Positions 1-48,691 of a stretch of 64,000 bases of DNA are shown in pieces. The stretch is taken from NCBI GenBank assembly GCA_001949185.1, contig BDGG01000004.1, forward strand, positions 1,885,620 through 1,949,619. The letters run 5' to 3'. Position 1 is the first letter of the stretch, and each line of letters opens with the position of its first letter. A model generated the notes under the pieces. That model did no database searches and was not told the DNA's origin. It saw only the letters and a program-made list of their open reading frames with translations. This DNA comes from Ramazzottius varieornatus. Taxonomy: Eukaryota > Animalia > Tardigrada. A program made the position numbers and the translations under genes.

Positions 1-1226
1 CCGAAGCCTTGCAGCCAGCTGACTGGGTTGTTGGTCAGACACACTTTGAGAGATTCCAGGCACTTGAGTGTCTTCTCCGACAAGTGCTCCGTCTGGGCTA
101 AGTACAGGCGGAAGTCTTCGGGTGTGTCGAACTTGTTGCTGCGGTGCTGTAAAGTAGCTTCCCCAATCAGATACTGAACACTGCGGAAAACCCAGTGTGA
201 AGCCAAGTATACCTGTGATTTCTCTTTATGCCGTAACAGAAGCATATTGCGCTTTTGTTCTTGCGGAAACGCCAGCAAGTTCGATCTGGCAGTTCCTTGT
301 AGATTCATATCGTCCTGCAAACAAACACGAACTGACATTTTGAAGTTAGACTTTTATCGCATGTCCGATGTCTTCTTCATTAAATACAATAAGCGTATCT
401 GTTATTCCAAATTTTGGCGCCATCCATTCTATTTCGCAACGTGGGTTTAATTCTAACGATTTTACATAGAGCCTCTGAGTTTGTTGAATGGAGAGTGACA
501 TCTGGAGAGCCGATCAAACACTCTTGTTTACGGGTGTTTGCCTTCGCTATCAATGCGAGCGCAAGAGCCGGCCGAAAAGCTAGTTGTGGTTTTGTCGGCC
601 ACACAAAAGATAAATAGTTATGACGGAATGTTGAAAAACACTCTTAGATTACACGTCTCTTCACCATACTCCGTACGCACCGCAGTCAAGCATAAAGATG
701 CACAAAAATCACGCATCTATCTTTGTCCTCTCAATCGCCGTCACGTATGTACCCTAACAATGACCATCGAGTGGACACGAATGAATACGTCGTTAAATTA
801 AAGAACTACCAATTACTATGCAGCAGATGGCGGAAAGAAATCCAAAACAAAATCCAGAAATGGGAGGCCAGCAGACGAAACGTACAAGATCTCCATGTCA
901 AGTGGCGCGCGCTTCCATTGTTACTGGCCAGAAGCGTGCGCCACCTGAGACATCGATGTTGCGCGTTCGTTTACAGGCTTCTAAATTTGATTCTGAGATA
1001 ACAAGTTCGGAGAAATTTAGCTCTGATTTACCAGCATCTTGTCGAACTCCTCGTTAAGCCTTGATTCGTCCAGGCTCTGGACGACGCGTTGATGTTCGGC
1101 CATGTCGGCTGCCGCGGCATTTGGGTCGTCCGATCGGAAAGCATTTCCCGTCGATCGTTTCTGATGCGTCTTTTCCTTTCCCTTATCTTTTCCGCTGAGC
1201 AATGTCGTCAACTTTCGGTTCAGCAT
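1..1226 (-). CDS. dia: Diaphanous-related formin, 5' part (GBD/FH3 region); gene continues beyond the left edge
   Basis: Spliced exons 1226-1032, 314-213 and 146-1 read MLNRK...LNEEFDKML|DDMNL...|...LKCLESLKVCLTNNPVSWLQGFG, matching the DIAPH motif LESLRVSLTxNPVSWVxxFG. Confidence 0.85.
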
Positions 1227-2431
1227 CTGAAGATATAAAATAAACAGCGCGTTACAAACGGGCGATTGTATGCATATTACTCACGTGGTATAACAGTCAC
1301 TGCCAAGTGCAGGAAGGTATTTCCAAGAGCCCTCATTCACGCCGGAAGGAACACAAAATATAACAACGCCTTTTGACTCGATTATGTGATTTATGTCCGT
1401 GGAATGTACCGAATCAAGTCTTGATGATAAATAACGACCCTACAATATTCTATCCGATGTAAGTTGCCCGTAATATTCATTAAAATAGCCTTTGCTCAAT
1501 TAGAATAACGATCGCCGTTTCATCAACATAAAATATGACCTCGCCATACTTCTGCAAACACGCTGGCGTGCGCGAGCACAGGATTTGACAAAGTGGATCG
1601 GCGGAGTGCGAGCTTGACGTACCTTAGAATTAACGATCATTAGCATAATTTTCATAACAAACTGAAAGCAGTTCAGCGCACTAAATGTCTCTAAATCTTA
1701 CTCCAGGTTTTGGTACTTTCTTGGTCTCGGAGCTGTGATCCATGATTCTTCTTAAAGGCGAGCGGTAAACAGGTTACACGGAGTATGGGTAGAGTCGTAG
1801 AGATGATCAACGTCGGGGAGATAGGAAGACGATCTCATACTGGAGTATCCATCCAAGGACGACGTCAATTGTACAAGAGTCTCGAGATTTCTCCGGAAGG
1901 TGCAGTGTTCACTGATTGCCGTAAGGAAAACTTTGTTACGATCAACCGTTAAGATAACAAGATTACGATGCCTCAACAAGTGGTTCTTCCACCAACAAGT
2001 GCGAGCGAAGGTGCGTGTTCTGATTTCCGTCTCTATCAACTTTTCGAGTCTTCATTCATCATTCCAAGGGTGATTCACAAATCCCCACATGACTCACAAG
2101 CGCACAGGGTAGACCACGGGGATTTCGGAGCAGCACCGCAGCAGCCGGACAGCCCTGAGGGCGTCACGAACCTGATCGACCAGACCGGGCACTCCCTCTC
2201 ACCCCAGCTTGGTGCAGGGGAAACCGAAACCCATAAAGTGAAGGTCAAACTACGGTACGACCGTACGAGGTACGTACGGCAGTTCGCTTGTTAATCAGGA
2301 TTGCAGTGCATCATGGACGTCTTCCTCCTCTACCCGAAATTGTTCCCTCGTCGTCATATTGTCTAATTTCAGGATCGATTACAGCGACGGATTACGCTCA
2401 TGAAGGACTGAAGCAAACCAGGAGCGAAGGC

Positions 2432-5107
2432 ATGCATCGACGAATTGGACTAGAGCCTGCGGGGCCATCAACCCTGTCTAGCAGAGCCAAGGAAGCATCG
2501 TTCATCCAATGTATTCCTGCTGCTTCAAGATACTCCCGACTTCTGCTGACGGGGATACATTTCCGTGTCGCTTACCAGTCAATGAGGAATGCTCATAACG
2601 GCTCGCTCACTGCGGATGGAAGGTTTTCAACCACACTGCATTCCTTATACAACAGAATCCCCGTGCGTCGCTTGTTATGGGTCCCCGTAGTCCTTGGTAC
2701 TGTCTTCGCTGGTGGGGTGTACCTGTCAGTACATCCGGACTACACAGAGAAACGCCGAATAATCCTGACGGCAAAGGGATTCCAGCGTTTTCTCAGGTGT
2801 GTTGCAACACGATTAAGAAACCCACCTAATAGAATCTTATACACTTTGGGTTTTCTAGAACAGCAAGCATTGGCACGACCATCTCGTGGGACTACTACTG
2901 GAGCCTGCGTGGTCTTGATTCCGTGAGTACGTCGAGGCAAACGAGAGGCAAACGAGAAACCGCAAGATAATGCTAAATATACCGCCAGTAACATTATGTC
3001 TGTTTGGAATATCGTAGAGCTCGCCGGAGTACGAAAGAGCACTGTCTGCTTGCCATGACAGGTCCAGCCACAGACTTCTTGCCGGATGCCTCCTCAACGT
3101 CAGTACAAGCTTTTGACCTTATGTAGGCGCTGGTTCGCGCCTGCGCGTTTGCGAATTAAGAAATGTTGGGAAACCTTTGCGGCACCAAATGGACAGTTAC
3201 TGACGTGATGACTTGCAGGGTGGTCTTTACGTTAAGCTGGGACAAGGACTATGTTCGATGGACCACATCTTGCCGAAAGAGTACATCTCGACGTTAAGCA
3301 CACTTCAAGACCGCGCCCTGGCACGTCAGTACAATGAGATTGAGCAGTTGATGGTCGAGGAGTTTGGTAGGAAGCCGGACGTGGTGTTCAAGACGTTCGA
3401 TCGGCTCCCGATTGCCGCTGCCAGCCTAGCGCAAGTACACCGCGCCACTACTCACGACGGCTATGTAAGTTCCTGTTGTTAGATTCCACATACAGTACCG
3501 TATCGTTGGTTGTACAGTGTACGACAAAATTAACCGTTACAAAACTAATGGGCGTAATACGGCAGCCGAAGCTTATTTACGACGCAGTTAATGAGAATTA
3601 TATTTTGCTGCATGAGTAAATTTCATTGGCTTCATACATCTGGCTCCATCCAACACCCAGTTTTAACGGTTTATTTTCGTTGTTGTTGTAGGATGTCGCC
3701 GTCAAGTGCCAGTATCCCGACCTGCGCGATCGCTTCGTCGGTGACTTGCGAGCAGTAGACATATTACTTCGAGTCATCGAGACGATGCATCCCAAGTTCG
3801 GCCTTCGTTGGGTTCTCGACGAGCTCAAAGACACTCTGGCCGAAGAACTGAACTTCGAGCATGAAGCAAAGAATTCAGAGAAATGTCGGCGCGACCTGTG
3901 GCGGCTTAAGCGGTTCCTGCACATACCGGATGTTCACTGGGACTTGACCACACAACGAGTCATGACTACCGAGTTCATCGGTAATACCTGTACTGTGACC
4001 GATGTGACGTCATTGAGGAATATGGGGTTGAACGTGGCCGAGGTGAACAAGAATTTGATTAGGATATTTGGCGAGCAGATTTTTATTTCCGGGTTCGTCC
4101 ATGCTGATCCACATCCCGGGAACGTCCTGGTGAGGAACGTGAAGGGGCGAGCACAAATGGTCTTGCTGGACCATGGCTTGTATGAGAGCATGAAGGACGT
4201 CGACAGGCAGAATCTTTGCCGGCTGTGGAAAGCCATAGTACTCAACGATAAAGCCGAAATGAAGACATACTCTTCTTTGCTCGGCGTAGAAGGTGAATAC
4301 ACACGTTCGATAAGTTTGTTAGTTGGAAATACTGTAATGCTAGAATGACAAGGCTTACTTTTCCAGACTATGAGATGCTGTGCGAAATCCTACTCCAACG
4401 GCCTCTGAGTCTCGATATAGGTGCGAGTGCAAACGCGATGAAGTCTGGTGGGAGCATGAAAGATGCCTCTGATTACATGCAACAGATGGCGCAGGACCGT
4501 TTCGACCAGGTAGATAAGTCGAGTCTGGATACCTCAGTTTTGACCTGAGACTTGAACTAAGTCGGCACGATTGTTTTTTCAAGTGGCGCACGATCGTGAT
4601 GTTATTGGCTGAAAACTTGCACCACTGGGCGAATAATCTTACCGAGTCTCTTTGTCGAACTCTCAACTGTCTTTGCATTCTTCCGTTACCTTGTACCGCC
4701 GAGAATTAACTTACGTCGCTTCGTAGATAATGAAGGTTTTGAAATCAATGCCCAAAGCCATGCTGCTGATAATGCGCAACTTGAACACTGTTCGCTCCAT
4801 CTGTGCTGTGCATGGGTTCCCGGTGGACCGTTTCACAGTCAATGCTCGAATTGCTGTCCGCGGCATCCATCATGAAAACCTTCCGGAAGTTGTACTGACG
4901 GATGGCAACCAAAGCGTCGTCGCCGTACAGGAGCGCCCTCTACGGACCAGGAAGTGGTCACTGCGGAAGTTCTTCTCTCGAGTATTCTTCGAATGGAGCC
5001 TGTTCCTGCGGCGGCTATACATCACGTCCGTAATCACATACCTTCGGGCACTTCACTTCCTGGGACGCATACCTGACGTTGAGGGTATTATCCAGTTCTT
5101 GCGCTAA
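2432..5107 (+). CDS. ADCK5: aarF/ABC1 (UbiB) domain kinase, ADCK5-like; multi-exon, start codon uncertain
   Basis: Motifs [48 protein letters not shown] and LLDHGLY; GT-AG introns; stop at 5105-5107. Confidence 0.85.
3515..3690. mobile_element. MITE family A, degenerate copy inside an ADCK5 intron
   Basis: TA followed by CAGTGTACGACAAAAT at 3513-3530. The body is clearly similar to 24899-25067, and the right TIR is eroded into the splice acceptor at 3690-3691. Confidence 0.8.
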
Positions 5108-26963: not shown

Positions 26964-28666
26964 ATGGACGGGATAGCCGCTCACAATACCCATCTGGCTT
27001 TCCAGGACTTAAGCAAGCTCAACGTCAAGGAGCTGACACCGCTTACGCACGAAGTGATTAGCCGTCAAGCTACTCTCAACATCGGAACTATCGGTATGCA
27101 ACCGCGCACTGCTCAAACTTATTGACTACGCAACACACTGCAGCTCTGTTCCAGGTCATGTCGCTCACGGAAAGTCCACCATCGTCAAGGCTATCTCCGG
27201 AGTGCAGACTGTACGTTTCAAGAATGAACTGGAAAGGAATATTACCATTAAGCTGGGTTATGCAAATGCGAAGGTAAGTCGTCAGCTTATCGATCTTTGG
27301 ACGCCGGTTGCACCAGGAAATCTCTGGGAAAGTGCAGTTCGTGAATACCGGTCCTGTTGAGTGAAAGGAAAAACGTCGGTGATGGTGATGCCGGTTTAGT
27401 GATGGTGCTGGTACTTTAAGACGGATCCTTTGTAGATTTACAAATGTGACAATGATGAATGTCCTCGGCCTGGATGTTATCGTTCAGCGGGCAGCATGAC
27501 CGAAGACGTTTTTCCATGTTCACGTGCAAACTGCGGAGGAAAGTTCCGTCTACTCCGACACGTCTCCTTCGTCGATTGCCCCGGTCACGACATTCTGATG
27601 GCCACTATGCTGAACGGTGCAGCAGTTATGGACGCTGCCTTGTTGCTGGTAGCCGGAAATGAATCGTGTCCGCAGCCGCAAACATCAGAACATTTAGCCG
27701 CTATCGAAATCATGAAGCTGAAACACATTATCATTCTCCAAAACAAGATTGACATCGTCAAAGAGTCACAAGCAAAGGAGCAGTATGACCAGATCCTGAA
27801 GTTTGTCCAAGGAACCGTGGCCGAAGGCGCTCCCATCATCCCCATTTCTGCCCAGCTGAAATACAACATTGAAGTGCTGTGCGAGCTCATTGTGAAAAAG
27901 ATTCCAGTCCCTCTGCGAGATTTCACTTCCGATGCCCGTTTAATCGTCATTCGATCTTTTGATGTCAACAAGCCTGGTTGTGAAGTGGAAGAACTGAAAG
28001 GGGGTGTCGCTGGTGGAAGTATCTTGCGAGGTGTCTTAAGAGTCGGTCAGGAGGTCGAGGTAATCACTCTAGTTGCCACTAAAAACTTGTGAAAGCAATG
28101 TAGAGTTATGTCTGCAGGTGAGACCTGGGATAGTTTCAAAGGACTCCGAAGGGAAGCTAACGTGTCGACCCATCTTTTCTCGCGTCATTTCGCTTCTGGC
28201 CGAACAGAACGACCTGCAGTACGCCGTTCCCGGTGGGTTGATCGGAGTGGGCACTCGCATCGATCCAACCCTCTGCCGAGCAGATCGCATGGTAGGTCAG
28301 ATTCTAGGTGCTGTGGGAGCGTTACCAGCCATCTTCACCGAGCTGGAAATGTCCTACTTTTTGCTGCGACGCTTGCTGGGTGTCAGAACTGAAGGTGACA
28401 AGAAGGGAGCTAAAGTACAGAAACTATCAAAGAACGAGATTCTGATGGTCAACATTGGGTCGCTGTCCACTGGCGGTCGAGTACTGGCTGTCAAGGCCGA
28501 TCTGGCCAAGATCAGCTTGACCAACCCTGTCTGCACCGAAGTCGGCGAGAAGATTGCGCTCAGTCGACGTGTGGAGAAACATTGGCGCCTCATCGGCTGG
28601 GGACAGATTCGTCGAGGAGTAACCATTACACCAACTCACATGAGTGCTGATCAACCCACGAAATGA
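26964..28666 (+). CDS. EIF2S3: Translation initiation factor eIF2 subunit gamma
   Basis: [69 protein letters not shown]. Confidence 0.97.
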
Positions 28667-29825: not shown

Positions 29826-30547
29826 CGTCGTCTTGACTTCCGGTCAGTCCGCAGGAACAAGTTAACCCGAGAGTCTGCTGCGCACTTCGGGCTGGCACTG
29901 CAGAGCTTGCACTCGTAGGCGGTTCTAATCCTTCCGACTTCTAACGAGCCGCTAACAATCCACAAGACCTGGTAAGATCTACGACGAAGAGCTAAGAACG
30001 TTTTTGTCTCCCAAAAATTCCGATTTCCAATTCCAAAATTAATAAATTTGCAAATTATGCGATACCGCGTTCGACAAATTGCGAATAAAAGCGACATTCC
30101 GTTGTGCCAGTTGATCGACTGAATGGAAAGTCCGTCTCCAGTTCATCAGTGAATGAAGCTATGTTCGTAATATGCTGATTTACATCTGCTTCCGATTTTA
30201 TGCTGTATATCGATTTTCGTTGACGTGTTCTGAAGTCCGAACTCCGGTTCGTCTTTCTCTATCTCGGTATCTGCAATCAGAGATTTGAACAGGTGGTCAT
30301 TATCTGGCATTTTTGAACTCCGATCTCCGGAGACAGCATTATCAGGATCGGCGAGAGTACGAGCAGCTGGCTGTGCGAGACGGCGAACCCAAGGACACAT
30401 CCCTTCGACATTGTGGGATCACTGTCTCGATGTGTTGATGTTCTTTTGTATGCATTTCTATCAGGTCTGCTTGAATAACTATGAGACCAGGACTGGAGGA
30501 TGAAGTGGGCGCCTGCCAGTCGGGACAACGTTGCTAGTTGTTGGAGA

Positions 30548-32573
30548 ATGTCCTTTCCAGACTGGGAAGAGGAACTAGCTGCTCAGAAGTCCCTGTTGAA
30601 CATTGGCAGACAGATGAACAAGAGGCGTGTTGGATCGAGAACCCCCGCGGTGGTGGTGGACAGTCCGGCTGCCGGAGATAGCGTCATCGCTGATGGAAGC
30701 CCAGGATCCAAGGACAGGAACTGGGATAATACGGAAGAAACAACACCTTCGCTGAAAGGAGACTGGAGCAATGTTACGCTCCTGCTGGTACTATACATCC
30801 TTCAGGGAATCCCTTTAGGACTCAGCGGTAGCATTCCCATGATTCTCAGCAGTCGTCATGTCTCCTATCACGATCAAGCCTTCTTCAGTTTGGTCTTTTG
30901 GCCGTTCAGTCTAAAGTTACTCTGGGCTCCCATCGTCGACTCCCTCTACTCGAAGAAGTTTGGCCGAAGGAAGAGCTGGTTGATTCCGACGCAATATCTC
31001 ATTGGGATCTTCATGCTGGTATTGTCCGTCACAGCAGACTCGGTTCTGGATCGCTCTACGGGTGGGTCGCCCAACATCCTCGTGATCACCGGGGTGTTCT
31101 TCGTCCTGAACTTCCTGGCTTCGATACAGGATATCGCGACGGATGGTTGGGCGCTCTCACTCCTCCGTCCGGCTAATGTGGGATATGCGTCGACGTGTAA
31201 CTCTGTCGGACAGACAGCTGGATACTTCATCGGCAATGTCTTGTTCCTGGCGTTCGAATCGCCGGACTTTTGTAACAAATATATTAGAAGTGTTCCGCAG
31301 GCGGAAGGTATTCTCACGTTACCCGGTTATTTATGGTTTTGGGGACTGACATTCGTTGCATGCACCACGGTCGTGTGGGTGATCAAGAGGGAGAAAGACG
31401 ATCGCCATGACGCTTCCGCCGGAATATACTCAGCATATGGGACGCTGTTGAATATTCTGAAGCTCCCGAGCGTGCTGAGGCTGAGCGTTGTCTTGTTAAC
31501 AGCAAAGGTTAGTCCACCCCGTACATTGAATCGCAAAGCTTTTTGGTGTCACAAATTGGAATTACGGTTTGGTTCTAATAGGCTGCTTTTGCTGCAGCGG
31601 AAGCTGTTGCTGGACTGAAGCTGATCGAATATGGCGTCCACAAGGAGCAACTTGCTCTCCTGGCGATCCCGATGGTCCCTCTGCAAATCATCCTACCTCT
31701 GCTCATAAGCAAATATACGGCTGGTCCGAAACCTATGAATATTTTTCTCAAAAGCTACCCTTTCAGGTGAGTAGCTTGTGAACTATTAAGTGAATTAAAT
31801 AGTGAAAATCGAAAGTTTTTTGGTCGGAAAATTAAAAGTGTGAAAGCGAAACGCAAACTGAAGCAATTCAAACAACGTATGTTTGTTCAGGGTAAGGTTT
31901 TTACAGAATGTTAATGGGACTGGAGTTCGCACTGATCGTCTGGATAACGCCCAAGATGCAGTCTGCCGATGGAACCTTTCCCACTTACTACTATGGACTG
32001 GTGCTACTTAGTTATGCTGTACATCAGGTAAGTGAATGCGACTTGCGGACCTCTTGCTGCTTCGAAAACGGCAGGCTAGGCGTTAGAGAGTGATCGTTTT
32101 CGGATGCTGTAGATTGCTCTTTATGGAATGTTTGTTTCGGTGATGGGCTTCTTTGCACGCGTCAGTGACCCAAAGATTGGCGGGACGTACATGACACTAC
32201 TCAACACAGTGTACAATCTGGGCGGAAACTGGCCTAATACTCTGGTGCTGGGTCTTGTTGACGACCTAACCTTCGCGACATGCAAAAGTGGCACACATGA
32301 AGGGCTAAGCTGCAACCAGAAGGATAAAAAAGAGGTTTGTTAACTTCGTTTCCTTTGATTTTTATTGATTATGAAATATGAACGGAGTGATTAATGACCA
32401 TTGGTATACAGGCATGTGACTCCGGTGGCGGAACATGTGTCGTTGACGTGGATGGATTTTATGTTCAAGTGATTATTTGCTTTGTTTTTGGTTTGTTTTG
32501 GTACCGGTTTTTCCGAACGAGGATTCAGCGCCTCCAGAATCTCCCTGAAAGTGCTTGGAGGCTGCAAAAATAG
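30548..32573 (+). CDS. SLC33A1: Acetyl-CoA transporter AT-1 (MFS); start codon uncertain
   Basis: LLLVLYILQGIPLGL, WPFSLKLLWAPIVDS, GRRKSWLIPTQY, ASIQDIATDGWAL, DPKIGGTYMTLLNT, DGFYVQ...LQNLPESAWR. Confidence 0.93.
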
Positions 32574-34476
32574 CACGCATATGGCATCAGTCTTTTCCTT
32601 TTTTCTTATCCGTCCATTCCACATTTCCGAGTGCGCGCACTCAGTCTTAGGAACTGTCGTCCCTAGTGCGTTTGCATAGGCTAGTGGGTCGTTCTATTGA
32701 TCAGAGACATATGTTTGTACAGCTCTAATTTACAGAGTAAATATGTTCAGATCGACGCTTCTTTCAAATCGTTAACCGTAATGTTCAGTCATACTTGATC
32801 AAACCCAAATCCGCGCTCAGAAATTTGACAAATTGCCCAAAAGAAAATTTTCAAAAGTTCTTGGAAGGTTATAACGATTGCCGGTTCTTTCGCATAGCAG
32901 AAGACTGTGGCTACTTCCGTATGAACACATACTTTCTATGTATGCTTTTGGTACGAGCGCCACAGATCTCTCAGGGTCCATGGATTTGCGCTCGGTGCGA
33001 AATCTTCTCTTTGGTGGGACTACAGTGGACAGGAAGAACCGCCTTGAAAAAACTGAATGGGGCTGTAATACGATCTTTGGGCGTACATTGCATGTGACAG
33101 TTATCGCATGAAATGATCCGTTGCTTCAATCGTTCGCCAGCTCTGTATCTTTGTGGGAGGGCGAAAAAATCAAGACCGAGAGATCTCCCCAAGCCATCGT
33201 CTTTGTGTCCCGCTCGTACATTCCTTTGATGGAAAAACGACACATCTTCAGTGTGTCGAGATTTTTGAATGGGTGTACTATTGGATGTACTGAATCTGTT
33301 GATCCGATAGGGGACAGCGACCCGCATTGCCGAGGGACCGAAGGAAATAGGAAGGAGGCTCTTCCTGATTTCTTGTCAACCTTCTCAGATCTCCTTGTGG
33401 TAGATTGTTTAGGTTCTCCTCGAGGCAGGTCCTTCTCACAACTTAAGTAATTGGTTTTTGACACTTCAAGAATTTGACAACATCCGCAAGAGAGCCCGTG
33501 AGGAAGTGCACGTATCCTGTGCAGCTGTGGGTGTCCGCGTTGGCTGCACCAGCACCAATTCTTTTCACAGTATTTTCTGAAACGAATCCCTTCTTTGATT
33601 CCATTGCGCCGCCTTGGATTGCTTCCTAACTGTAGAGGACTTTGTCTGCTTTGCAAGAAGGGAAGATTGGCTGTCATCAGCCATCTTTATTGTTTATTAG
33701 TCCATCCAACACAGTTTGAGTTATCGTATTTGATAGATTTGCCAGCTCGATCAATATTGCAACGGATGTCCATCCGGTAGTGTCTAGATCCATTCCCGTT
33801 CTTTGCGCTGTATTTGCAAAGATGATGCCTTATATAAACCACAAGCCTGATTCTGGCCCTTATCAGTTCTTCCAGCTCTTCCAGTGGGTCGACTCATTGT
33901 GGTCCAGCGAAACAAAGTTTCATGGTACCGGTGGCTCCTCGAGCAGCTGTTTATGTCCTGTTGTGAAGGACTTATCCGGCTTATTTCGTACCTGTGAGGA
34001 ACATTGCTGAGGTTGTCCGGTGACATCCTGCGAGTTATTATCGGCTGTATGAGCAGCTTGACGGACGTGTAAAGTTGGTTGGAGGGCTCAATTGTCAACA
34101 ATTTTTGCGGCAATCCACCGGATTAATTTTACATCCATATTTGCACTTGGACAAGTTTCATCACTGCGGTTTCCGGATTGTTGTTGAAACTAATGGCAGC
34201 AACAATGCTCAATTAAGCATGCAGAGCAAGGCCCATTTTCTGGACTTTTGATGACCTGGACTTCCGGCAGGCGAGATGGACCATCTGCAGCGCCAAATGC
34301 TGACAACTATGCCTTTAAGTGCTCTCGCTTTCGACGGAAGTTTCCTGCTGCGTATGCTATGCTTATGGCCGAGATGCGTGATAGCATTCCTTGACTCTTG
34401 CTGAGGTTTCTCCTTTCATCATTTTCTGCCGGAAAGCGCGGAACGGAAATATACATCGCGCAGGACAAATGTGACC

Positions 34477-37400
34477 ATGCCCAGTGTTATCCATTCCATA
34501 ATGCGCCTGACTACTTCCTGGTTCGTCATAGTCCTTCCTGGTATGGCCATCATGATGAAATCTGCTGTGTTGTGACGGTCTGCCAAATTCAAGCTATCGT
34601 ATTTGACGTTAAACTGTGATTTGATAATTCAGTTTTCTTTCTAGTGGCGTCTCAGTTGGCGAACCCTATTCAGTCAAATCGGCTTTATGCCGATTACGCC
34701 CGATCGACACAATCAAATTTTGGAGCACTGGCAGATGTAAATGTTTTCTCAACTAATCCCAACGGACCAACGCCATTTCACATGAAGTACAGCAATACCG
34801 GATGCGAATTACAACCAAATTTCCGGTGTGCATCTTTGGATGTCTGCATTCCTCTGAATCAGGTCGATTACTGAAACACATGCTTCTCTGTCATGGTCTC
34901 CCGCTTATTACTATAGTTTTCAAATTTTTCCCTACTAATTTTTTGTTTCAGGTTTTGAACGGATACAAAGGTAGGAAAATGCTACGCCATAATCTTAACG
35001 AGAATAACATTTAATGAATATTTCGCCCAGATTGCCCCGATGGCTCGGACGAAGAGTCGAGACTGGTAAGGGTCGTTGAACTTAAGCACCTGTGAAAAAT
35101 TGTGATCATTATTTTCGGCTTTTGGGATTTTTTGATAGCAGTGCTGATCGAGAATCCTTGTGATGTTGTAGATGGATTATTGTACACTTGGCTCTGCGTT
35201 TCATCGGTGTGATGCTAATTCCCGCTGCTTGACAACTGCTTTCGGATATCGATGTCAGTGCAAAGACGGATATACCGGTGATGGCTTCTACTGCGAAAGT
35301 AAGTGCTAATGAAGGACGTGTGGTTCCAACCATGGGCGGCACAATAGGGAAGGGAACCGAAGATGAGTGTCGGCTGACATTAAATTCATAACTTCGATTG
35401 ACCCACATATTACCATAACAAAAATCACTTTGACCAAGTCTCTTTTCCCGGCAGAGTTCCCTGTGGGAATTCAAATCGCGGCTACATTTGGCGAAGACGA
35501 TCTCCATCAGACATTAGAAGACGTGCCAGTGCGCTTCAACGTATCACTGGTGGTCGTTCCCGCCGCTCCCGACGGATACAATACCAACCTCACCCTGACT
35601 GTAATCGGATTACCCAAGGAAGCTTCCTTCGATATAGGCAGGTGATCGTTATGGTGATGTCACCTTTTGTTTCTTTAGCACAACTGGTATGAACCTACGG
35701 CAAGCCATAAAAAATACACTGAAAAATTCTTTCAAACACTTGCATACACTAAGCTGCGTTCTTGCTGGTCTGCGGAAGTATGCAGGCGCGTGAAAGAGTC
35801 AGACTCGTCGCTTGTGAACTCTCACTTGGAAGAGATAAGCTGGTTCTTCACAATAAGGCTAGTCTCTCTGAAAATTTGCATATGTTGCGACTTTGGTCGG
35901 TTTCCGTTTTCTGCAGGTAGTCCATGCAACATGACTTCCTGGTGTTTCACGGAGGCGGACTTTGTCTTTGGGACCTACGTGAGCTCGCTATTCTATCCGC
36001 CCAGAGACTGGTCGGGCACCATACCCTTTACCATCGTGGCAGAGATGGTGGTGCAAGGATACTGGATTACGGGGTACTCGGCCACGACCCTTACAGTAAT
36101 ACCCGTTCCTGATCCCCCGGTTTTACGAGTCGGTACAGCCTGCTTCAAAGACGGCGATGATACGCAAGTGGAGATTCCTGTCAGTGCTCGTTTAACCGAC
36201 GAAGACTCTGAAGAGCTGGAAGTTGATTTGGATGGACTTCCTGAGGGATTTGATGTTTCCACATGGACAGACCAGACGGGTAATTAGGAGATTAACTTTA
36301 ATCTGCCTCTTTAATTGTGGTATCTATTGTGGCCAAGCAGTTCGTGTGTTCGACTAGGTCAGGAATATAGTATGGCCGACAACGGCAGCAGCGTCCTCGG
36401 ACAATCGTCGCTCGTCACGCGGCTGATCGTTAAACCCACTGGACAAAAGATGGGCCCATTCAATGCAACTGTCATTGCTATCGCTCGAGAAAAAAGCAAC
36501 GGACTACAAAATCAAACAGTACGACACATTACGGTGGAAAAGTGCCCTCCATGTAAGAAATGAAGTTAGATGGATGACCATGAACACACTAGTCGACCAA
36601 AGAATATTTGCTGACAAACATAGGGAAAATTCGATAATGAAATCCGTGTTGACGCCCCTCGAGTCAAGAGCATGGATTTATCAAATTTCACTTATTATTC
36701 AATTTCTGGAATTACCCATGCATATAAGTGTTTGATGAACGAGCGAGAAGCCGGCATCTGAATTGTAATGGTAGATCAGTATATCATCACTCTTGATCTT
36801 CCTTGTTTGTTCTGTCTGAATAGATCCGGATATGAGCGTCATATTCGTGGTGCCACCTACGACCCTGGAAGATAAGAATATTCCTTTTCAAGTATCAGTC
36901 AGGGTATGTCCAATATATATGTTTGGCTGTAAGAGTCTGCGAACCTTCCTCTCTGAACGAACTTGTTTGTAGTTTGGGCTCGACGAAAGTCCGCGGCTAA
37001 TGGCCATTCACATTTTGGATTTGCCCCCAAGCGCTTCCTTCAACCGTGGCCATCGAGCGATCAATGACTCGTGGATACTATCGCGGAAAGATCTGGCTGA
37101 GGAAGGCCTGGAGCTTATTCCTCCACGTCGGTATTCGGGAGATCTAATTCTGACGGGCAGGACGGATGTGTTGTATCGTGGCTTTGAATACCAACTGAAT
37201 TCAAGCGCCACAATAACAATTTTGCCTGTGGTCAATGCGCCACGGCTATCCATATCGCCCGAAGTAGTTTGTCTATCAATCAATACCACAAACATGACCT
37301 TCTCTGTGGATGCCGCCCTGACCGATGATGACGGATCGGAAAGCCTCATCCTGACTTATAACATCCCAGAGGAATGGATAGGTTCAGTTGGGGATGCTTA

Positions 37401-39282
37401 TCACGGAAGTTACAGCTCCATGATAACCCAATCAAGTCATGAACTCATTAACGTTACAGTCGCCTCACCCGCCGGCTTCATTTATCCCATAGAAATACCA
37501 GTGGTGCTGATGGCTGTGGAGAATGCTAACGCTGACCAAAATATTGTATACAAAGTTGTCCGTGTCCAAGTTTGCGATGCCGCTCAAGCTGCTGCAAGTG
37601 CAGGTAAGAAGAATATTTTCGAAGTAGAACGTGGAATTTTAGTCATTGGTATTACCGATTAGCCTTTTCGGTTCTGCAGGATTGAGGCAACGAACTACCA
37701 TAATATGGAACGTGACCACGCCCCAGCCGTCGTTCATCCACGAGGATATTTGGTCTCAACCGCGTTCCTTCCTCGCACATTCCAATGCTACGTTGACCAA
37801 GGGACAGTCAGGGAAGAACATATCTGCATTGGCTCTTTATCGCACAATTGTGAACTCTTCATCGGTTGAGAAGGACCAAAGGATAAACAGTAGCAGTATG
37901 ATGAACCTCTCGTCCGCGTACTGGTACAAGAACGCCTCTCGAGCCAACACAACTGGAAACTACCTCGTCGCCGAATCCAGCCTTATCACTGTAACACAGC
38001 TTCCTGACCAAACGCAGGACGACGAGTCGGTAATCCGAGTGAACGATAGCAACATTGTTACATCTAAAAGGCGTACTACAGCCGGTAAGATCAAAACGCC
38101 GAAGCAGAACAAGGAGCACGGCAGTACCAGAAGCCGCGATAGGTCCAAGCCAAGGACCCGGAAGCCGAAGCTACCACAACTGGTTGCCGTGACCGGTAAG
38201 GCGAAGTTGGACGATATCGAGCTGGAGCAGCACGTTAGCATCGATAACGGCACGGAAGATATACCAATAAGAATTAACATTTCGGTCACGACAAGGAATG
38301 CCCCCCGCAATGCCGCCGTCCAAGTCAGGATATCGGGACTTCCTACTGGATCCTATCTGGACAAGGGCGAGAAGGAAGCTAGTAGTCACGCCTGGCTCCT
38401 ACAGTACGAGGACTTGGGGTCTTTGTTATTGCACCTGCCCCAGCACCAGGCAGGTTTGCTGCCAATAATCATCACTTCGACACTGGAGCTGCAAAGGAAC
38501 AAGTCTCTCTCCGCTCGACAGAGTTTCGAAATTTCTGTACGACCGGAGACGGACTTTGGCCAGATCGATATAAAAGGTCCATACCTTGATCGAGGGTGCG
38601 TGGACAAGTCGGAGAAGGAAATTCGTCTTTCCTTGAAAGTTGTGCTGGAAGACAACGGTAGGTACGATCACAATGCTTTTCACTGGTTTCGTTGGTACCG
38701 CTTTCTTAGTTATGGTTCTCCATTTTGATTGCAAAATTTTTCAGACGGGTCGGAAGACGTGGAATTTCTCGAAGTGACCGGCATACCGAAGAGTGTTCGC
38801 ATGTACCCAGGGCGTTACATAGGTAGGTCCTCCGTTCGTAGTTCCCGGCTTGCGGCAGCTTAACGAGCCCGATTGATGTTAGGCGGCAGTGACTGCCTCG
38901 AATTTTATAATTATTATATCTGACAGGAAGCGAAAGCTCCCGGATTATATTCCCAAAAGAGCTGCCTGGTCTGGTACTGCGCACTGACACCGTCTTCTCC
39001 AAATTCCGAATGACGATAGACGCTAAGGTCCGGGAGAAGGACACTGGAATTCGCTCCTCAGTTTCCCGCCAGTTATTTATCGAAACCTGCACGAATGGAG
39101 CTGCGAGTAAGGAATCAGGTAATGTTCAGATCGCACAGTCTTAGCAGAATTTTCTACCTGGTCTTTAACACGCTCATTGTTTAGTAGAAAGAATCCAAAG
39201 GAGCAACGGATCAAGATTTCCGAACGTTTTCACTGCACTGTTACTTTGCCTTCAAGTTTTGTTAGTACTGTGCTGTAGATGA
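34477..39282 (+). CDS. Chimeric cell-surface protein (~1,080 aa): signal peptide, LDLa, EGF, three bacterial-adhesin-like Ig modules, GPI-like tail
   Basis: About 14 exons with compatible phases. MRLTTSWFVIVLPVASQ signal; CELQPNFRCASLDVCI...DCPDGSDE; six-Cys EGF ending CQCKDGYTGDGFYC; repeats with ED.P, GLP..G...W, P..WSG/YSG, PV.D.P.L and LTDDDGSE; hydrophobic C-terminus. Confidence 0.8.
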
Positions 39283-39555
39283 CAGGTAAGATTAAGATCT
39301 TCAAGCAAGTAGTCTTCTCAAGCACGAATACGACTGTGATAGAATCCAAACATGAATTAGGATGATATCAATAAATAATTTACTCCTAGCTAAAAGTTTC
39401 TCCTTTCCAATATATCGAGGGTGTCAGCAGAAAAAGCCCGATTTACACATGAAAAAACGGTTTTTGAGAAAGCTCTTGCAGGTAAAGTTCACGGTTCGCC
39501 TGACCGCCGAACAAAATAACTCAGAGTAATCCTTGTTGGTTTTTCGGGCTGTAAC

Positions 39556-45600: not shown

Positions 45601-47014
45601 GGTGTGGTTTGTATGATTGTAACGTGAACCGACTTGCAGTAATTCAAAACTGCATTTTTTCTCTGATTTTCCTGATTAAGCCCACTCCTCGTTTTAGTCT
45701 GTGACGAAATGGAAACAGTTGGGAGCGCTAGCGTTGAAAACGTCGGACTTCAAGCTAGCAGAAGAATGCATGATTCAGGCGGAAGACTACATGGGTCTTT
45801 TGTTGTTGGCCAACTGCAGCGGTAATCGTGATTTGATGAAGCGCTTGGCTAGAATGGCAGAAGATAAGCAGCGCTTCAACGTGGCTTTCACAGCCAACTG
45901 GAGTTTGGGAAAGTGAGAAAAATCTCCTTATCAGTTCAGTGGCCTTGTTGTACATGTGCTGTGCTCCTCTCTGTTGTAGATTAGAGAACTGTTTAGACAT
46001 TCTCATCAAGTCCGATCGCCTCCCAGAAGCAGCCATTTTTGCCAGAACGCACCTCCCAAGTCACGTAGGCCGTGTCCTACTCACATGGAAGGAAAAAATG
46101 AGCCGAACGAACGTCAAAGCTGCCCAGGCTCTAGCTGATCCTGTACAATACCCCAACCTATTTCCTGGTTTCGAACAAGCTCTTCATGCTGAACAGTTCT
46201 TCAGACAAGAAAGAAGTCAGCTGACTCCTGCCAGCATGTATTCCCAGATACCGGTAAATATTAACATAAGACAAGACAAACAACTAGAAATTACTAAAAG
46301 CGTACCATTCTTTCAAGCACGTGCATACAGGAACTTGTCATCATGGCCGTCTATGCAGGTGTATGAAATGGCTCAGTCGAATTCGCATGGATTGTCAAAA
46401 GGCTTGACAAAAGCCATACCCCGTGTTAGGGCGCGCCTGTCATATATAGCAAAAACTATACGTTCCGTGTATGCAGGTTCATGAAATATTGTTCTGCTTT
46501 TCTGCCGATTTGCATTGGCTATTTGGCTGCATGTACTTCGGAATTATGATCACTCTAATAGGGGAATCTAATTGCAGAGACCTGACGATAGGCACCTGAT
46601 TGAAGAAACGCAGGATGCCGAAAGTAGCGGTCAGTTTCACTATTCACCGGAAGCGCCACCTACGAAAGCCGACGAGATGGATGCTGCAGGTAGAAGGTCT
46701 GTCAGATCGGAAGATAGTTCTGAGACGGAGCGCGCAACTTCCAGGCCGAAACCTTACGAGAACGGGGAGACTCCGACAGTCATCCGTGATGCACCGCCTT
46801 TACTCAACTCACAAGCCCATCAGCCCGCCCACAACGGAACAGACACGGATGATATCGACCAGCTGCAAGAAGAGCTGGACGACCTGGACTTCAATGGCGT
46901 GGACGGGCATGTGAGAAAGGAAAATTTCGTTTGCCTTTTTACGTATTGAATATTGATTTCAGTGAGAACCATCTTTTGCAGGATCTGCAGGAGGACGACG
47001 GCAGCCTTATCTAA
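42655..47014 (+). CDS. COPB2: Coatomer subunit beta'
   Basis: The first coding exon is only ATG, followed by [23 protein letters not shown]; WD40 repeats; [11 protein letters not shown]; [13 protein letters not shown]; [15 protein letters not shown]. Confidence 0.97.
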
Positions 47015-47239: not shown

Positions 47240-48691
47240 TTAGTGGAATTCAGGCTTGGGGATTCCGAACTGATCGTAGAAGTATCCACGAAGCGTCGAC
47301 TGGCTGAAGGGGAACGGGCTGCTGTTCGAGCTAGACGTTAGGTTATGGGTATAGTTCTTCCACGGAGAGGGCGAACCGAGGTCGCCAAGCGATCCGTTGA
47401 CGTGGTACGTGTGGGAGCCACACTGTGGGACGAAAGCACTGCAGGCGGAAGAATGCGGAAGTCCGACCTACAGACAACAAGGATGTTTCTCGAGTGTTCG
47501 TACGAATACAAACAGGAGTAGGGAGATCTCTCCGGATTAGATAAAAAAACCCTCCAGGCCAAAATATATCCAGGCGGTCGAACAATATGTTAGTACATTC
47601 GTAGCTGACTGTATTCAGTTTTCTATCAGATTTAAAGTAGCCAAAGTTTTTTTTCTAAAGATGTACTTCAGGCAAAAACCCACCTTGAATAACGGAGTTG
47701 AAACTTGAGCCAGTTTTTGACATTGTTGATGGATGTAGGATGCGTAATTGGCTTGGTTGAACTGCATGGCCTGATCAATGCCCAGGTTCAACGAGTGCGG
47801 CGGGGAATGCGCGGGAAGTGTGCCGAACATGGATTTCGCGGAGAAGACCTCGTTGTAAGGACCCAGGGTGCGTTGTCCTGACCCGCCTGAATAAAACGCG
47901 CGCTTCATGCGACGACGGCGCTGATAATTGCCGTCTTTGTACATATCCAAACAGCTACTGTCCACTGCCCAGTAACACCCTAAAAAGCGGTACAGTAAAG
48001 ATCCAAAACTCTTAACAACAAACTGCGGACTAGCATCTCTATTTTTTGAGTTTTCCATTAAAGGACTTGGCTAAACCATCAAAGCTGAACAACCAAGCTC
48101 TAACAGAAACCGACCTTTCCGTTCTCCCATTCCAGGGTCGCGCGGTAGCTTGATGAAGCAATCGTTTAGGCTAAGGTTGTGACGGATGCTGTTCTGCCAG
48201 CCCTTCTTGTTCTTCAGGAAGTACGGATAGTTCTTCACGATGTAAGCATAAATGTCACACAGCGGCAGTTTCTTCTCCGGCGACTCCTGGATGGCCTTGA
48301 AGATGAGCGCCACATAGCTCAAAGGAGGGCGCTTCGAGTCCTCGGATTGGTCTTCGGATACCTTGTCTTCCGTATCCGCCTCTTGGTCATCTGGCTGGGT
48401 CTCCATTTGATGGCTCGTGAACGATGAACTGGAAGGGCGTTGAGATCCGAAACGATTAATTTGAGGAGTTTGGTGGATGACGGTCTCGTGCTGTTGCGAT
48501 GAAAGATAATTACCATCTTGTGGGGAGTAATGTATTTCTTGTTGCAGTTGTGGTAAGGAATTTGGCGAGTAGTCGGCAAAGGTCTGGTACTCAGCGGGAA
48601 GATGCTCAAGTGCGCCAGAATGATTACCTCTCAGATTCAACTCAGGTTTCACGAAGGGAAAGCTTCTCTCTACTTCCGCTAATTTGTCCAT
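47240..48691 (-). CDS. FoxL2: Forkhead transcription factor, FoxL2 class; 3 coding exons
   Basis: [10 protein letters not shown]...[34 protein letters not shown]|[40 protein letters not shown] and RRRRMKR are FoxL2-type signatures. Confidence 0.85.

Follow-up and report, generated by a model that had tools for sequence, protein, structure and literature searches.

An expressed mosaic surface-protein gene of the tardigrade Ramazzottius varieornatus with repeats resembling those of giant bacterial adhesins

In this study, we analysed a gene within a 64,000-nucleotide stretch of the Ramazzottius varieornatus genome (the window, to which all positions refer) and found it to be a genuine tardigrade gene, transcribed and present in one copy, that encodes six repeat units. 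These units appear homologous to the ~108-residue tandem-95, or bacterial cadherin-like, repeats that build the stalks of giant surface proteins in bacteria, including RTX-type ones. Its product is probably a secreted protein of 1085 residues that is probably N-glycosylated and probably GPI-anchored. The best reading of its origin, to which we assign a probability of roughly 0.65, is that a bacterial repeat cassette was transferred, and that intron gain and cassette duplication followed. Gene transfer into tardigrades has been a disputed claim, and most accepted cases concern whole enzymes. In the present gene, only a structural repeat cassette seems bacterial in type, and confirmed splicing places it within a mosaic surface protein of an animal.

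The coding region (34477..39282), which like all features described below lies on the forward strand, has 14 exons totalling 3258 nt, or 1085 codons and a stop. Spliced contigs place exons 1–7 at 34477-34540, 34645-34862, 34952-34970, 35031-35065, 35172-35298, 35455-35637 and 35917-36279, and exons 8–14 at 36358-36552, 36824-36903, 36973-37603, 37680-38657, 38745-38822, 38927-39118 and 39188-39282. All 13 introns were absent, at the predicted places, from transcript contigs of four runs belonging to four studies, and one contig of 5007 nt begins in the 5' UTR, takes in the LDLa, EGF and repeat exons and ends in the 3' UTR. A preliminary description, made from the sequence alone, had proposed about 14 phase-compatible exons between the same start and stop, with the LDLa/EGF and repeat exons on one transcript rather than on separate ones, and the RNA-seq contigs bear it out on each of these points. 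Twelve introns are GT-AG and one is GC-AG (35638-35916); exon 3 is a microexon of 19 nt (34952-34970), and the open reading frame is kept in phase across all 14 exons. The start codon at 34477 is the first in-frame ATG downstream of an in-frame stop, and the stop codon ends at 39282. Differences between strains comprise 11 synonymous and eight non-synonymous changes (pN/pS ~0.23) and one 3-nt insertion that keeps the frame. No paralogue was found in the genome (55.8 Mb, 200 contigs) using a single-exon query and a profile query.

The protein begins with a signal-peptide-like N-terminus (34477..34655; exon 1 and the start of exon 2), which by translation and hydropathy consists of a basic residue, a hydrophobic W-F-V-I-V-L core and small residues. 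The LDLa module that had been described next to it (34803..35065; exons 2, 3 (the microexon) and 4), identified from Pfam and by-eye reading, is interrupted by two introns and is degenerate; by eye it keeps cysteines 1, 2, 3 and 5 and the D-C-x-D-G-S-D-E calcium cage, and is without cysteines 4 and 6. With exons scanned singly, its C-terminal half (exon 4) was seen by Pfam below the cut-off (PF00057, E 0.02, 15.6 bits against 24.1), and exon 2, which encodes the N-terminal half, gave no PF00057 match. The EGF module (35172..35298), with six cysteines on a single exon, was fully upheld by scores above the Pfam cut-offs (PF12947 EGF_3, 1.1e-8, 35.6 bits against 28.5; PF00008, 23.8 bits against 21.5). 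Between repeat units 4 and 5 lies a linker of ~178 residues (37680..38215), delimited by composition, the first part of which is rich in S, T and N and has nine N-x-S/T sequons, followed by a 45-residue basic stretch (15 K/R, two D/E) that includes K-R-R; the linker has no match among Pfam families. The C-terminal exon (39188..39282) encodes, by translation and hydropathy, S-N-G-S, a short spacer, a 17-residue hydrophobic tail (hydropathy 2–2.9), one Arg and the stop, and this tail looks like a GPI signal.

The six repeats form three A/B pairs, in which an A subtype without DGSE alternates with a B subtype that has D-x-D-G-S-E. The preliminary description had recognised three two-domain modules starting near 35518, 36868 and 38256; those starts agree with ours, but a single repeat family, represented by six units, describes the architecture better. 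A 108-position HMM trained on bacterial units only, and searched exon piece by exon piece, detected all six tardigrade units (42.3, 29.4, 28.4, 25.1, 12.2, 8.2, 6.0, 5.0 and 4.3 bits), a resemblance well beyond chance expectation. Unit A1 (35511..36101) was detected in exon 6 (profile 15-51) and exon 7 (profile 74-91), and the GC-AG intron, of phase 1, lies within the Gly codon of its s-a-G loop. Unit B1 (36102..36536; 28.4 bits over profile 1-55 and 12.2 bits over profile 58-104) has a T-D-E-D-S-E-E variant of the acidic motif and a phase-1 intron (36280-36357) within the Gly codon of its s-a-G loop as in A1, and its exon 7 portion gave a faint match to PF17803 Cadherin_4 (12.4 bits against a cut-off of 25.1). 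Unit A2 (36832..37224; 5.0 bits in exon 9 and 29.4 bits in exon 10, profile 33-87) holds a phase-0 intron (36904-36972). Unit B2 (37225..37572; 25.1 bits, profile 1-101) lies whole on exon 10 and has the acidic motif T-D-D-D-G-S-E; the unit and its D-x-D-G-S-E motif are kept in three probably orthologous fragments. Unit A3 (38216..38551; 42.3 bits, profile 13-104) is whole on exon 11. In unit B3 (38552..39081; 4.3 bits in exon 12, profile 34-54, and 6.0 bits in exon 13, profile 66-102), splice junctions confirmed the intron that had been read as splitting the acidic motif at 38657/38745 (D-N-D-G-S-E, phase 1, 38658-38744), and a second phase-1 intron (38823-38926) lies within the Gly codon of the s-a-G loop. 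The A-to-B linkers are P-V-P-D-P-P in module 1, P-V-V-N-A-P in module 2 and, in degenerate form, R-P-E-T-D-F in module 3. Phase-1 introns border each of the three A-B cassettes, whose lengths (741, 711 and 1248 nt) are divisible by 3. In total the repeats hold five spliceosomal introns, spliced out in transcripts of four studies, and the s-a-G loop intron is common to three units (A1, B1 and B3).

An exhaustive phmmer search with exon 10 as the query against 1.84 billion representative sequences gave 331 matches, the best 150 of which were listed. The top matches are proteins 1–6 kb long, with 0–0.2% Cys and up to 36 matched stretches each, at E values down to 3.8e-195, and the best single stretch (48.4 bits, E 6.7e-15) is in a Magnetospirillum protein carrying RTX nonapeptides. 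Among the 150 listed, all but four exon-sized fragments look bacterial, as judged from the source names of 30 and from composition alone for the rest; of those 30, four are tardigrade-like fragments and about one third of the remainder had no name. Where a source name was available, the matches belonged to Rhodospirillales or to further groups of Pseudomonadota and bore the labels tandem-95, cadherin-like, Ig-like or calcium-binding. Examples are Pikeienuella ('tandem-95 repeat'), Paracraurococcus and Azospirillum ('Ig-like'), Haematospirillum, Elioraea, Aliarcobacter ('hemolysin-type calcium-binding') and Magnetospirillum ('calcium-binding protein'). Bacterial matches carry Cadherin_4, Cadherin_5, Big_9, NF012211 and HemolysinCabind, pass NF012211, PF17803, PF17892 and PF17963, alternate between units with and without DGSE as the tardigrade protein does, and contain more than 1700 near-full-length units, compared with one gene in the tardigrade genome. 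The nearest ESM Atlas clusters were bacterial in 30 of 30 cases. Identity to bacterial units was 35–46% in local matches of 38–81 residues, which is higher than the identity among the gene's own units. The four short fragments, at 52–64% identity, are probably tardigrade orthologues.

Pfam at E<=1 gave no match of the repeats to metazoan Cadherin (PF00028), CSPG-type Cadherin_3, Calx-beta or He_PIG, and NCBIfam, searched exon by exon, gave none at E<=1. With exons searched singly, the repeat units were under the curated thresholds of all Pfam and NCBIfam repeat models; since exons had to be searched one by one, the scores of split units were lowered. The RTX nonapeptide (PF00353) was absent from ten stretches scanned with Pfam, and exon 13 had no RTX-family match in NCBIfam. 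A separate search for homologous proteins returned nothing. The full-length protein itself was missing from the best 150 of 331 phmmer matches, so that some eukaryotic entries are clearly lacking in the library or withheld from it, and homologues in other animals are possible. In a repeat tree with weak support, the tardigrade A and B units did not form one clade and no donor could be named. The earlier view that the repeats are bacterial-type rather than widespread metazoan domains is one on which the phmmer, Pfam and PDB profile results all agree.

AlphaFold2 (AF2) predicted all-beta, beta-sandwich models (pLDDT 84.5 and 84.9), A2 included, with values of ~85–94 for B2 and 93–97 over residues 1–110 of A3, and no unit in these models had an inserted ligand-binding module. 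The Ig-like split domain of the Aeromonas RTX adhesin AhLap (9cse_A) was the best match for B2 (Z 11.9) and tied best for A3 (Z 10.2), at 17–20% identity. A sequence-profile search of the PDB also led to AhLap and to no other entry (E 5e-5), with S-L-T-D-R-D-G-S-E as the aligned stretch. The likeness to bacterial adhesin repeats first noticed in sequence motifs extends to the predicted fold. The beta-sandwich is common, with many unrelated chains at Z 8–10, and protocadherin and cadherin-23 were generic fold matches only (Z ~8).

The sequence of events that we favour begins with a piece of a bacterial gene, containing at least one A-B pair, that would have entered the genome of a tardigrade ancestor. 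The acquired repeat would then have gained spliceosomal introns, the cassette with its phase-1 intron borders would have been duplicated, and exon shuffling would have brought the cassettes together with a signal peptide, a GPI signal and the LDLa and EGF exons of an animal. The intron common to the loop of three units suggests that unit duplication postdates intron gain, which is a poor fit with the import of a ready-made A/B alternation. Criteria used for horizontal transfer in tardigrades are non-metazoan affinity, expression, introns and presence in a second tardigrade (PMC5531438); in this gene we found non-metazoan best matches, expression and splicing, and the four fragments (52–64%) bear on conservation. 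Horizontal acquisition, as the preliminary description had it, is supported by the bacterial best matches and the spliced single transcript. Its basis is distribution and similarity, not a well-supported tree, and transfer is not proven because the repeat tree is weakly supported and the coverage of eukaryotes in the libraries is uncertain. The fuller proposal, that tardigrades captured the stalk repeat of a giant alphaproteobacterial RTX-type adhesin, which gained introns and was then domesticated as duplicated cassettes, yielding a GPI-anchored, calcium-stiffened LDLa/EGF surface protein, is one to which we would give even odds.

Vertical descent, from an ancient beta-sandwich family of eukaryotes or metazoans, kept by tardigrades but lost or diverged past recognition in most sampled animals, or a source in another eukaryote, is unlikely but not negligible; in that case the likeness to bacterial repeats would go back to a distant shared ancestor or to a transfer that ran the other way. 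It gains from the uncertain eukaryote coverage of the searched libraries, with the protein itself and annotated tardigrade orthologues missing among the best 150 of 331 phmmer matches, from the empty homologous-protein search, from a repeat tree that does not resolve, from the typically animal LDLa and EGF partners, and from the intron position common to three units, which would imply a long stay in a eukaryote. It is difficult to reconcile with zero metazoan repeat families at E<=1 in Pfam, with listed matches (150 of 331) that look bacterial except for four exon-sized fragments, with an identity to bacterial units (35–46% over 38–81 residues) above that between the gene's own units, and with more than 1700 bacterial units set against one gene without a paralogue. 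Chance or convergent likeness without homology, arising from brief acidic and G-L-P motifs carried by a generic Ig-like fold, is highly improbable: even though the curated family models stayed under threshold and the Ig-like fold is very common, full-unit alignments reach 25–48 bits per single unit or stretch (E down to 3.8e-195) and the register is kept over 108 positions, including the P-V-x-D-x-P linker, the central W and the P-P-x-x-(F/Y)-S-G strand. Bacterial contamination has a history in tardigrade assemblies (PMC5531438), but a contaminant or chimeric misassembly that fused bacterial DNA onto an animal gene is for practical purposes excluded here because the spliceosomal introns are confirmed and the neighbouring genes, of eukaryotic housekeeping and developmental kinds (acetyl-CoA transporter, eIF2-gamma, coatomer and forkhead), are animal, both as had been argued at the outset. 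Five introns inside the repeats are removed in transcripts of four studies, the LDLa/EGF and repeat exons occur together on one transcript, GC content equals that of the flanking animal genes, no close relative was found among 185,579 bacterial and archaeal species genomes, and the units are ~30% identical to bacterial units, far from near-identity.

Judging from the bacterial relatives, the D-x-D-G-S-E loops and P-V-x-D-x-P-like linkers would bind extracellular Ca2+, which would stiffen the units into rods, a calcium role that leans on the published RTX adhesin extenders (PMC7493085). Such rods could keep the LDLa/EGF end, or the repeats themselves, at a distance from the membrane, where they would adhere to matrix, cuticle or microbes, a putative role that had been suggested at the outset. 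Given the same origin, the protein might instead be shed or cleaved at the basic linker and then work in soluble form, either within matrix or cuticle or, through LDLa/EGF, in pattern recognition or ligand trapping. This is a distinctly improbable job for it: the 45-residue stretch with 15 K/R, K-R-R included, between units 4 and 5 is in keeping with cleavage, and the nearest domain of solved structure, that of AhLap, is of the 'split' kind, which presents ligand-binding modules and is no plain extender (PMC12077191), whereas the AF2 models show no such inserted module in any unit.

If bacterial transfer of the cassette is true, parts of bacterial adhesins can join the exon-shuffling pool of animal extracellular proteins, and this would be the first known animal protein using a bacterial tandem-95 adhesin stalk. 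If the repeat instead proves widespread in animals, it would still define a metazoan domain family, so far overlooked, with kinship to the bacterial cadherin-like repeats. The system is testable, as the units are small and their calcium dependence is directly measurable, and R. varieornatus is reported to be editable by DIPA-CRISPR (PMC11175437).

The closest known systems are the tandem-95 and bacterial cadherin-like repeats (NF012211; PF17803, PF17892 and PF17963), exemplified by Pikeienuella WP_165100303 and Magnetospirillum WP_002726886, with which the tardigrade units have in common a ~108-residue period, a predicted beta-sandwich, an E-D start, the D-x-D-G-S-E loop, a G-(L/V)-P-x-G turn, a central W, the P-P-x-x-(F/Y)-S-G strand, the P-V-x-D-x-P linker and the DGSE/non-DGSE alternation. 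Similarity to accepted members, a tandem period within ~95–110 residues and an Ig-like fold were all found, with scores under the curated cut-offs. Bacterial proteins have tens of units, whereas the tardigrade protein has six, which carry cysteines, N-glycosylation sequons and spliceosomal introns unlike their bacterial counterparts, and it has a signal-like N-terminus, LDLa, EGF and a GPI-like tail in place of a retention module. The RTX/T1SS-adhesin likeness first proposed holds for the repeat and not for the whole protein, whose identity as an RTX adhesin or T1SS substrate we rejected since it has no RTX nonapeptides, T1SS signal or retention module and only six units. The Ig-like domain of AhLap, an RTX adhesin of Aeromonas hydrophila (PDB 9CSE), is similar in sequence profile and fold but is interrupted by an RTX beta-roll ligand-binding module (PMC12077191), whereas the tardigrade units are uninterrupted. 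The extenders of MpIBP, SiiE, MhLap and AhLap (PMC7493085) are likewise tandem beta-sandwiches with acidic residues near their linkers; these families differ in sequence from one another and from the tardigrade repeat, whose putative Ca2+ rod is modelled on them. Among animal proteins, cadherin EC and FRAS1/FREM CSPG (Cadherin_3) repeats are also tandem beta-sandwiches of cell surface or matrix that bind Ca2+, as is predicted for the tardigrade units, although the tardigrade repeats had no PF00028 or CSPG-type match at E<=1. A precedent for a bacterial surface-toxin module combined with EGF in animals is provided by the teneurins, which are reported to be adhesion receptors on the cell surface (PMC6297184 and bioRxiv 10.1101/2025.11.11.687626). 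The teneurin module is a YD-shell toxin, unlike the tardigrade repeat, and teneurins are ancient and animal-wide, whereas the present gene is so far seen only in tardigrade-like sequences; if its bacterial origin is true, it would parallel the way teneurins arose, but at a later date and within a restricted lineage.

Alignment of contigs assembled from four runs, each from a different study, to positions 34300-39500 revealed that the gene at 34477-39282 on the forward strand is composed of 14 exons. The contigs skipped thirteen stretches which, once their cuts had been moved within the aligner's stated ambiguity, comprised 12 GT-AG introns and a sole GC-AG intron (35638-35916, forward strand), while fifteen extra contig letters at 34864-35029 were resolved as a 19-nt microexon (34952-34970, forward strand) in the LDLa-like module. 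The runs carried no RNA label, but a contig without any of the introns can derive only from spliced RNA. The combined exon length is 3258 nt, the reading frame stays open from each exon into the next, and 34477 is the earliest in-frame ATG downstream of a stop. A single 5007-nt contig in one transcript contig set (X5) spans the 5' UTR, every exon and the 3' UTR, and a contig in another (X4) joins the earliest exons straight to the first repeat exons. Therefore, the LDLa/EGF portion and the repeat portion form one transcript rather than two separate ones, and the spliced contigs, splice cuts and open frames bear out all coordinates of the preliminary description. Low-depth contigs also contained intron sequence adjoining exon 7 (35713-35922), and one such contig read through the exon-2 donor (34863-34915), representing unspliced or intron-retaining transcripts in both cases.

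Comparison of the contig sets with the assembly showed that the 2016 run (X1) has the assembly sequence with no differences. The sets X3, X4 and X5 (2022-2023, three studies) have 24 substitutions in common relative to the assembly within 34417-39461; they also share an in-frame insertion of TAC after 38073 and the loss of 1 nt from the 3' UTR. This suggests that two strains or haplotypes are carried under one species label. The coding differences between the strains comprise 11 synonymous and eight non-synonymous changes and one in-frame insertion, and the pN/pS of about 0.23 indicates that the gene is under constraint.

The encoded protein begins with a signal-peptide-like sequence (residues 1 to ~25, as read from the sequence), followed by ~50 residues with no assigned domain and an LDLa-like module distributed over three exons. 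This module retains the D-C-x-D-G-S-D-E cage and four cysteines (1, 2, 3 and 5); cysteines 4 and 6, which are normally paired together, are both absent, and the Pfam match to LDLa, with exons searched singly, covers only the C-terminal half and is sub-threshold. The EGF module has six cysteines and passes the Pfam threshold. C-terminal to it are six repeat units in the order A1, B1, A2, B2, A3 and B3, the B units having a D-x-D-G-S-E-type motif. Units four and five are separated by a linker of ~178 residues with nine of the 24 N-x-S/T sequons of the whole protein and a basic stretch of 15 K/R in 45 residues. At the C-terminus, S-N-G-S and a short spacer precede a run of 17 residues that is hydrophobic in the hydropathy profile, and the last residue is Arg. 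Overall, the initial observation of this gene was confirmed.

The preliminary description had also proposed that the repeats are of a bacterial RTX-adhesin type and horizontally acquired. All our searches and fold predictions were made with single exons, and intron-split units thus score below the level of whole units; the sole Pfam/NCBIfam match of the repeats was a faint one to the bacterial Cadherin_4 (E 0.23). In a phmmer search of 1.84 billion representatives, the 229-residue open frame of exon 10 (36973-37603, the end of A2 and all of B2) had 331 matches, 50 of which were below 1e-30. Among the best 150 of the 331, nearly all are proteins of 1000-6000 residues whose cysteine content is 0-0.2%, and as many as 36 stretches match within a single protein. 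Source names were looked up for 30 of these 150, four of which are short tardigrade-like fragments. About a third of the other 26 are nameless, mainly from metagenomes, and those named are from Pikeienuella, Paracraurococcus, Azospirillum, Magnetospirillum, Haematospirillum, Elioraea, Aliarcobacter, Candidatus Magnetoglobus and unclassified Pseudomonadota, with annotations such as "tandem-95 repeat protein", "Ig-like domain-containing", "cadherin-like", "hemolysin-type calcium-binding" and "Ca2+-binding RTX toxin-like". The bacterial matches pass the models Cadherin_4, Cadherin_5, Big_9 and NF012211, and some have RTX nonapeptides. The top single stretch (48.4 bits, E 6.7e-15) is in a Magnetospirillum calcium-binding protein with terminal RTX repeats.

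Alignment to the bacterial proteins stays in register across two entire units, including the G-L-P turn, the central W, the P-P-x-x-(F/Y)-S-G strand, the P-V-x-D-A-P linker and the D-x-D-G-S-E loop. In addition, a 108-position HMM built from about 2000 bacterial units alone detected all the tardigrade units, piecewise, in the expected profile segments, and the nearest ESM Atlas clusters were bacterial in 30 of 30 cases. Judged by these sequence comparisons, the tardigrade repeats are bacterial in type. The bacterial proteins and the tardigrade protein also have in common an alternation of units with and without DGSE; in Pikeienuella piscinae WP_165100303 (4106 residues), 18 near-identical 216-residue modules at residues ~195-4060 each pair one DGSE unit with one that lacks it, giving the same alternation. 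Other searches returned little: a length-windowed homologue search with exon 10 had no match, a blank that means little since the window excludes full-length kin and known fragments were also missed; a metagenome-scan locus had a 20-residue match with the rest of the gene absent and was dismissed as chance or unrelated; and a single-exon PDB sequence search returned a peroxidase at E 0.28, a chance match.

Confident beta-sandwiches were predicted for exon 10 (mean pLDDT 84.5) and for the end of exon 11 (37680-38657), which encodes all of A3 (mean pLDDT 84.9). Foldseek gave only generic Ig-like matches. In a scan of 48,161 PDB representatives, 9cse_A was the top chain for B2 (Z 11.9, 112 residues, 20% identity) and joint top for A3 (Z 10.2), and it was the sole PDB chain found with a profile of the tardigrade and bacterial sequences (E 5e-5). 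The 9CSE structure shows a "split domain" of Ig-like type from the RTX adhesin AhLap of Aeromonas hydrophila, where a small RTX beta-roll interrupts it (PMC12077191). As many unrelated sandwiches also reach Z 8-10, the fold lends support to the sequence comparisons, on which the case itself rests.

The gene lies among ordinary animal genes, with open reading frames for eIF2-gamma (27496-28663, GTP_EFTU and eIF2_C), an acetyl-CoA transporter (30500-31615), a coatomer TPR domain (45939-46481), a forkhead domain (48074-48691, reverse strand) and an ABC1 atypical kinase (3746-4345), and GC content is even along the whole window. No close relative was found in 185,579 bacterial and archaeal species genomes, which rules out both contamination and a recent transfer. 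Queries of the 55.8-Mb, 200-contig assembly with a single exon and with a profile revealed no paralogue besides the gene itself. A multi-exon gene on contig C15 (50789-53977, reverse strand) with repeated T-D-x-D-x-P type motifs and a PF17803 Cadherin_4 score of 24.3 bits (cut-off 25.1) was rejected as a paralogue, since it was missed by the repeat profile and, by eye, resembles a CSPG repeat protein of the FRAS1/FREM type. The only non-bacterial-looking sequences among the best 150 of the 331 phmmer matches were four exon-sized fragments (135-177 residues, 52-64% identity) from Logan, ENA and JGI contigs, which keep the D-x-D-G-S-E motif. One starts precisely at the exon-10 acceptor, and the fragments diverge from the tardigrade sequence beyond the end of exon 10. 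We take them for candidate orthologues from at least three other tardigrade-like genomes. Our literature search found no paper describing the protein, and the gene could not be identified, searching without a gene id, in the supplementary tables of published tardigrade HGT candidates (PMC5531438, PMC5034306).

We consider a transfer of the repeats from bacteria to be the probable origin (about 0.65). The reading proposed initially is supported, with the limits on the searches and the tree that are given here. Vertical descent, or an origin from another eukaryote, seems unlikely. The phmmer evidence consists of the best 150 of 331 matches, the gene's own full-length protein was absent from that list, indicating that some eukaryotic entries are absent from the searched set, and a second homologue search was blank; for these reasons, homologues may exist in other animals. 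The repeat-unit tree places orthologous B2 units together (support 1.0) and A2 with A3 weakly (0.33), and was not counted as evidence because the tardigrade units do not fall into one clade and no donor emerges. For every unit, the nearest sequence is a bacterial unit rather than one of its sisters, a biased comparison (1755 bacterial units versus 10 pieces) that was not used for dating the duplications.

The gene structure bears on how a bacterial repeat would have become the present array. Each of the three A-B cassettes lies between phase-1 introns and has a length that is a multiple of three, the pattern expected if exon shuffling duplicated them. In A1, B1 and B3, a phase-1 intron interrupts a Gly codon in the one s-a-G loop that these units share; the remaining two introns within units have another place or phase. 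The common loop position suggests intron gain ahead of the multiplication of the units in the animal, although insertion may also have occurred repeatedly at a favored site. It fits uneasily with import of an array in which A and B already alternated.

Classical cadherins and FREM-type CSPG proteins were rejected as identities, as no such Pfam model matched single exons at E<=1. Calcium stiffening is a principle of cadherins. The same principle applies to RTX adhesins, in which extenders made of beta-sandwiches in tandem take up Ca2+ in or close to the linkers and form rigid rods that project binding modules off the cell (PMC7493085). In the tardigrade protein, the acidic loop is retained by the B units and Asp/Asn by the linkers; given the secretory features and GPI-like tail, the units would face millimolar calcium outside the cell. 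Possibly, pairs of units form two or three stiff rods with a flexible linker, glycosylated and basic, between them; these rods would be lipid-anchored through the GPI-like tail and may present LDLa/EGF, or bind via the repeats, to matrix, cuticle or microbes. It is not itself an RTX adhesin, as it differs from these in having no nonapeptide repeats, T1SS signal or retention module. Both bacterial cadherin-like repeats and domesticated transfers in tardigrades are kinds already known.
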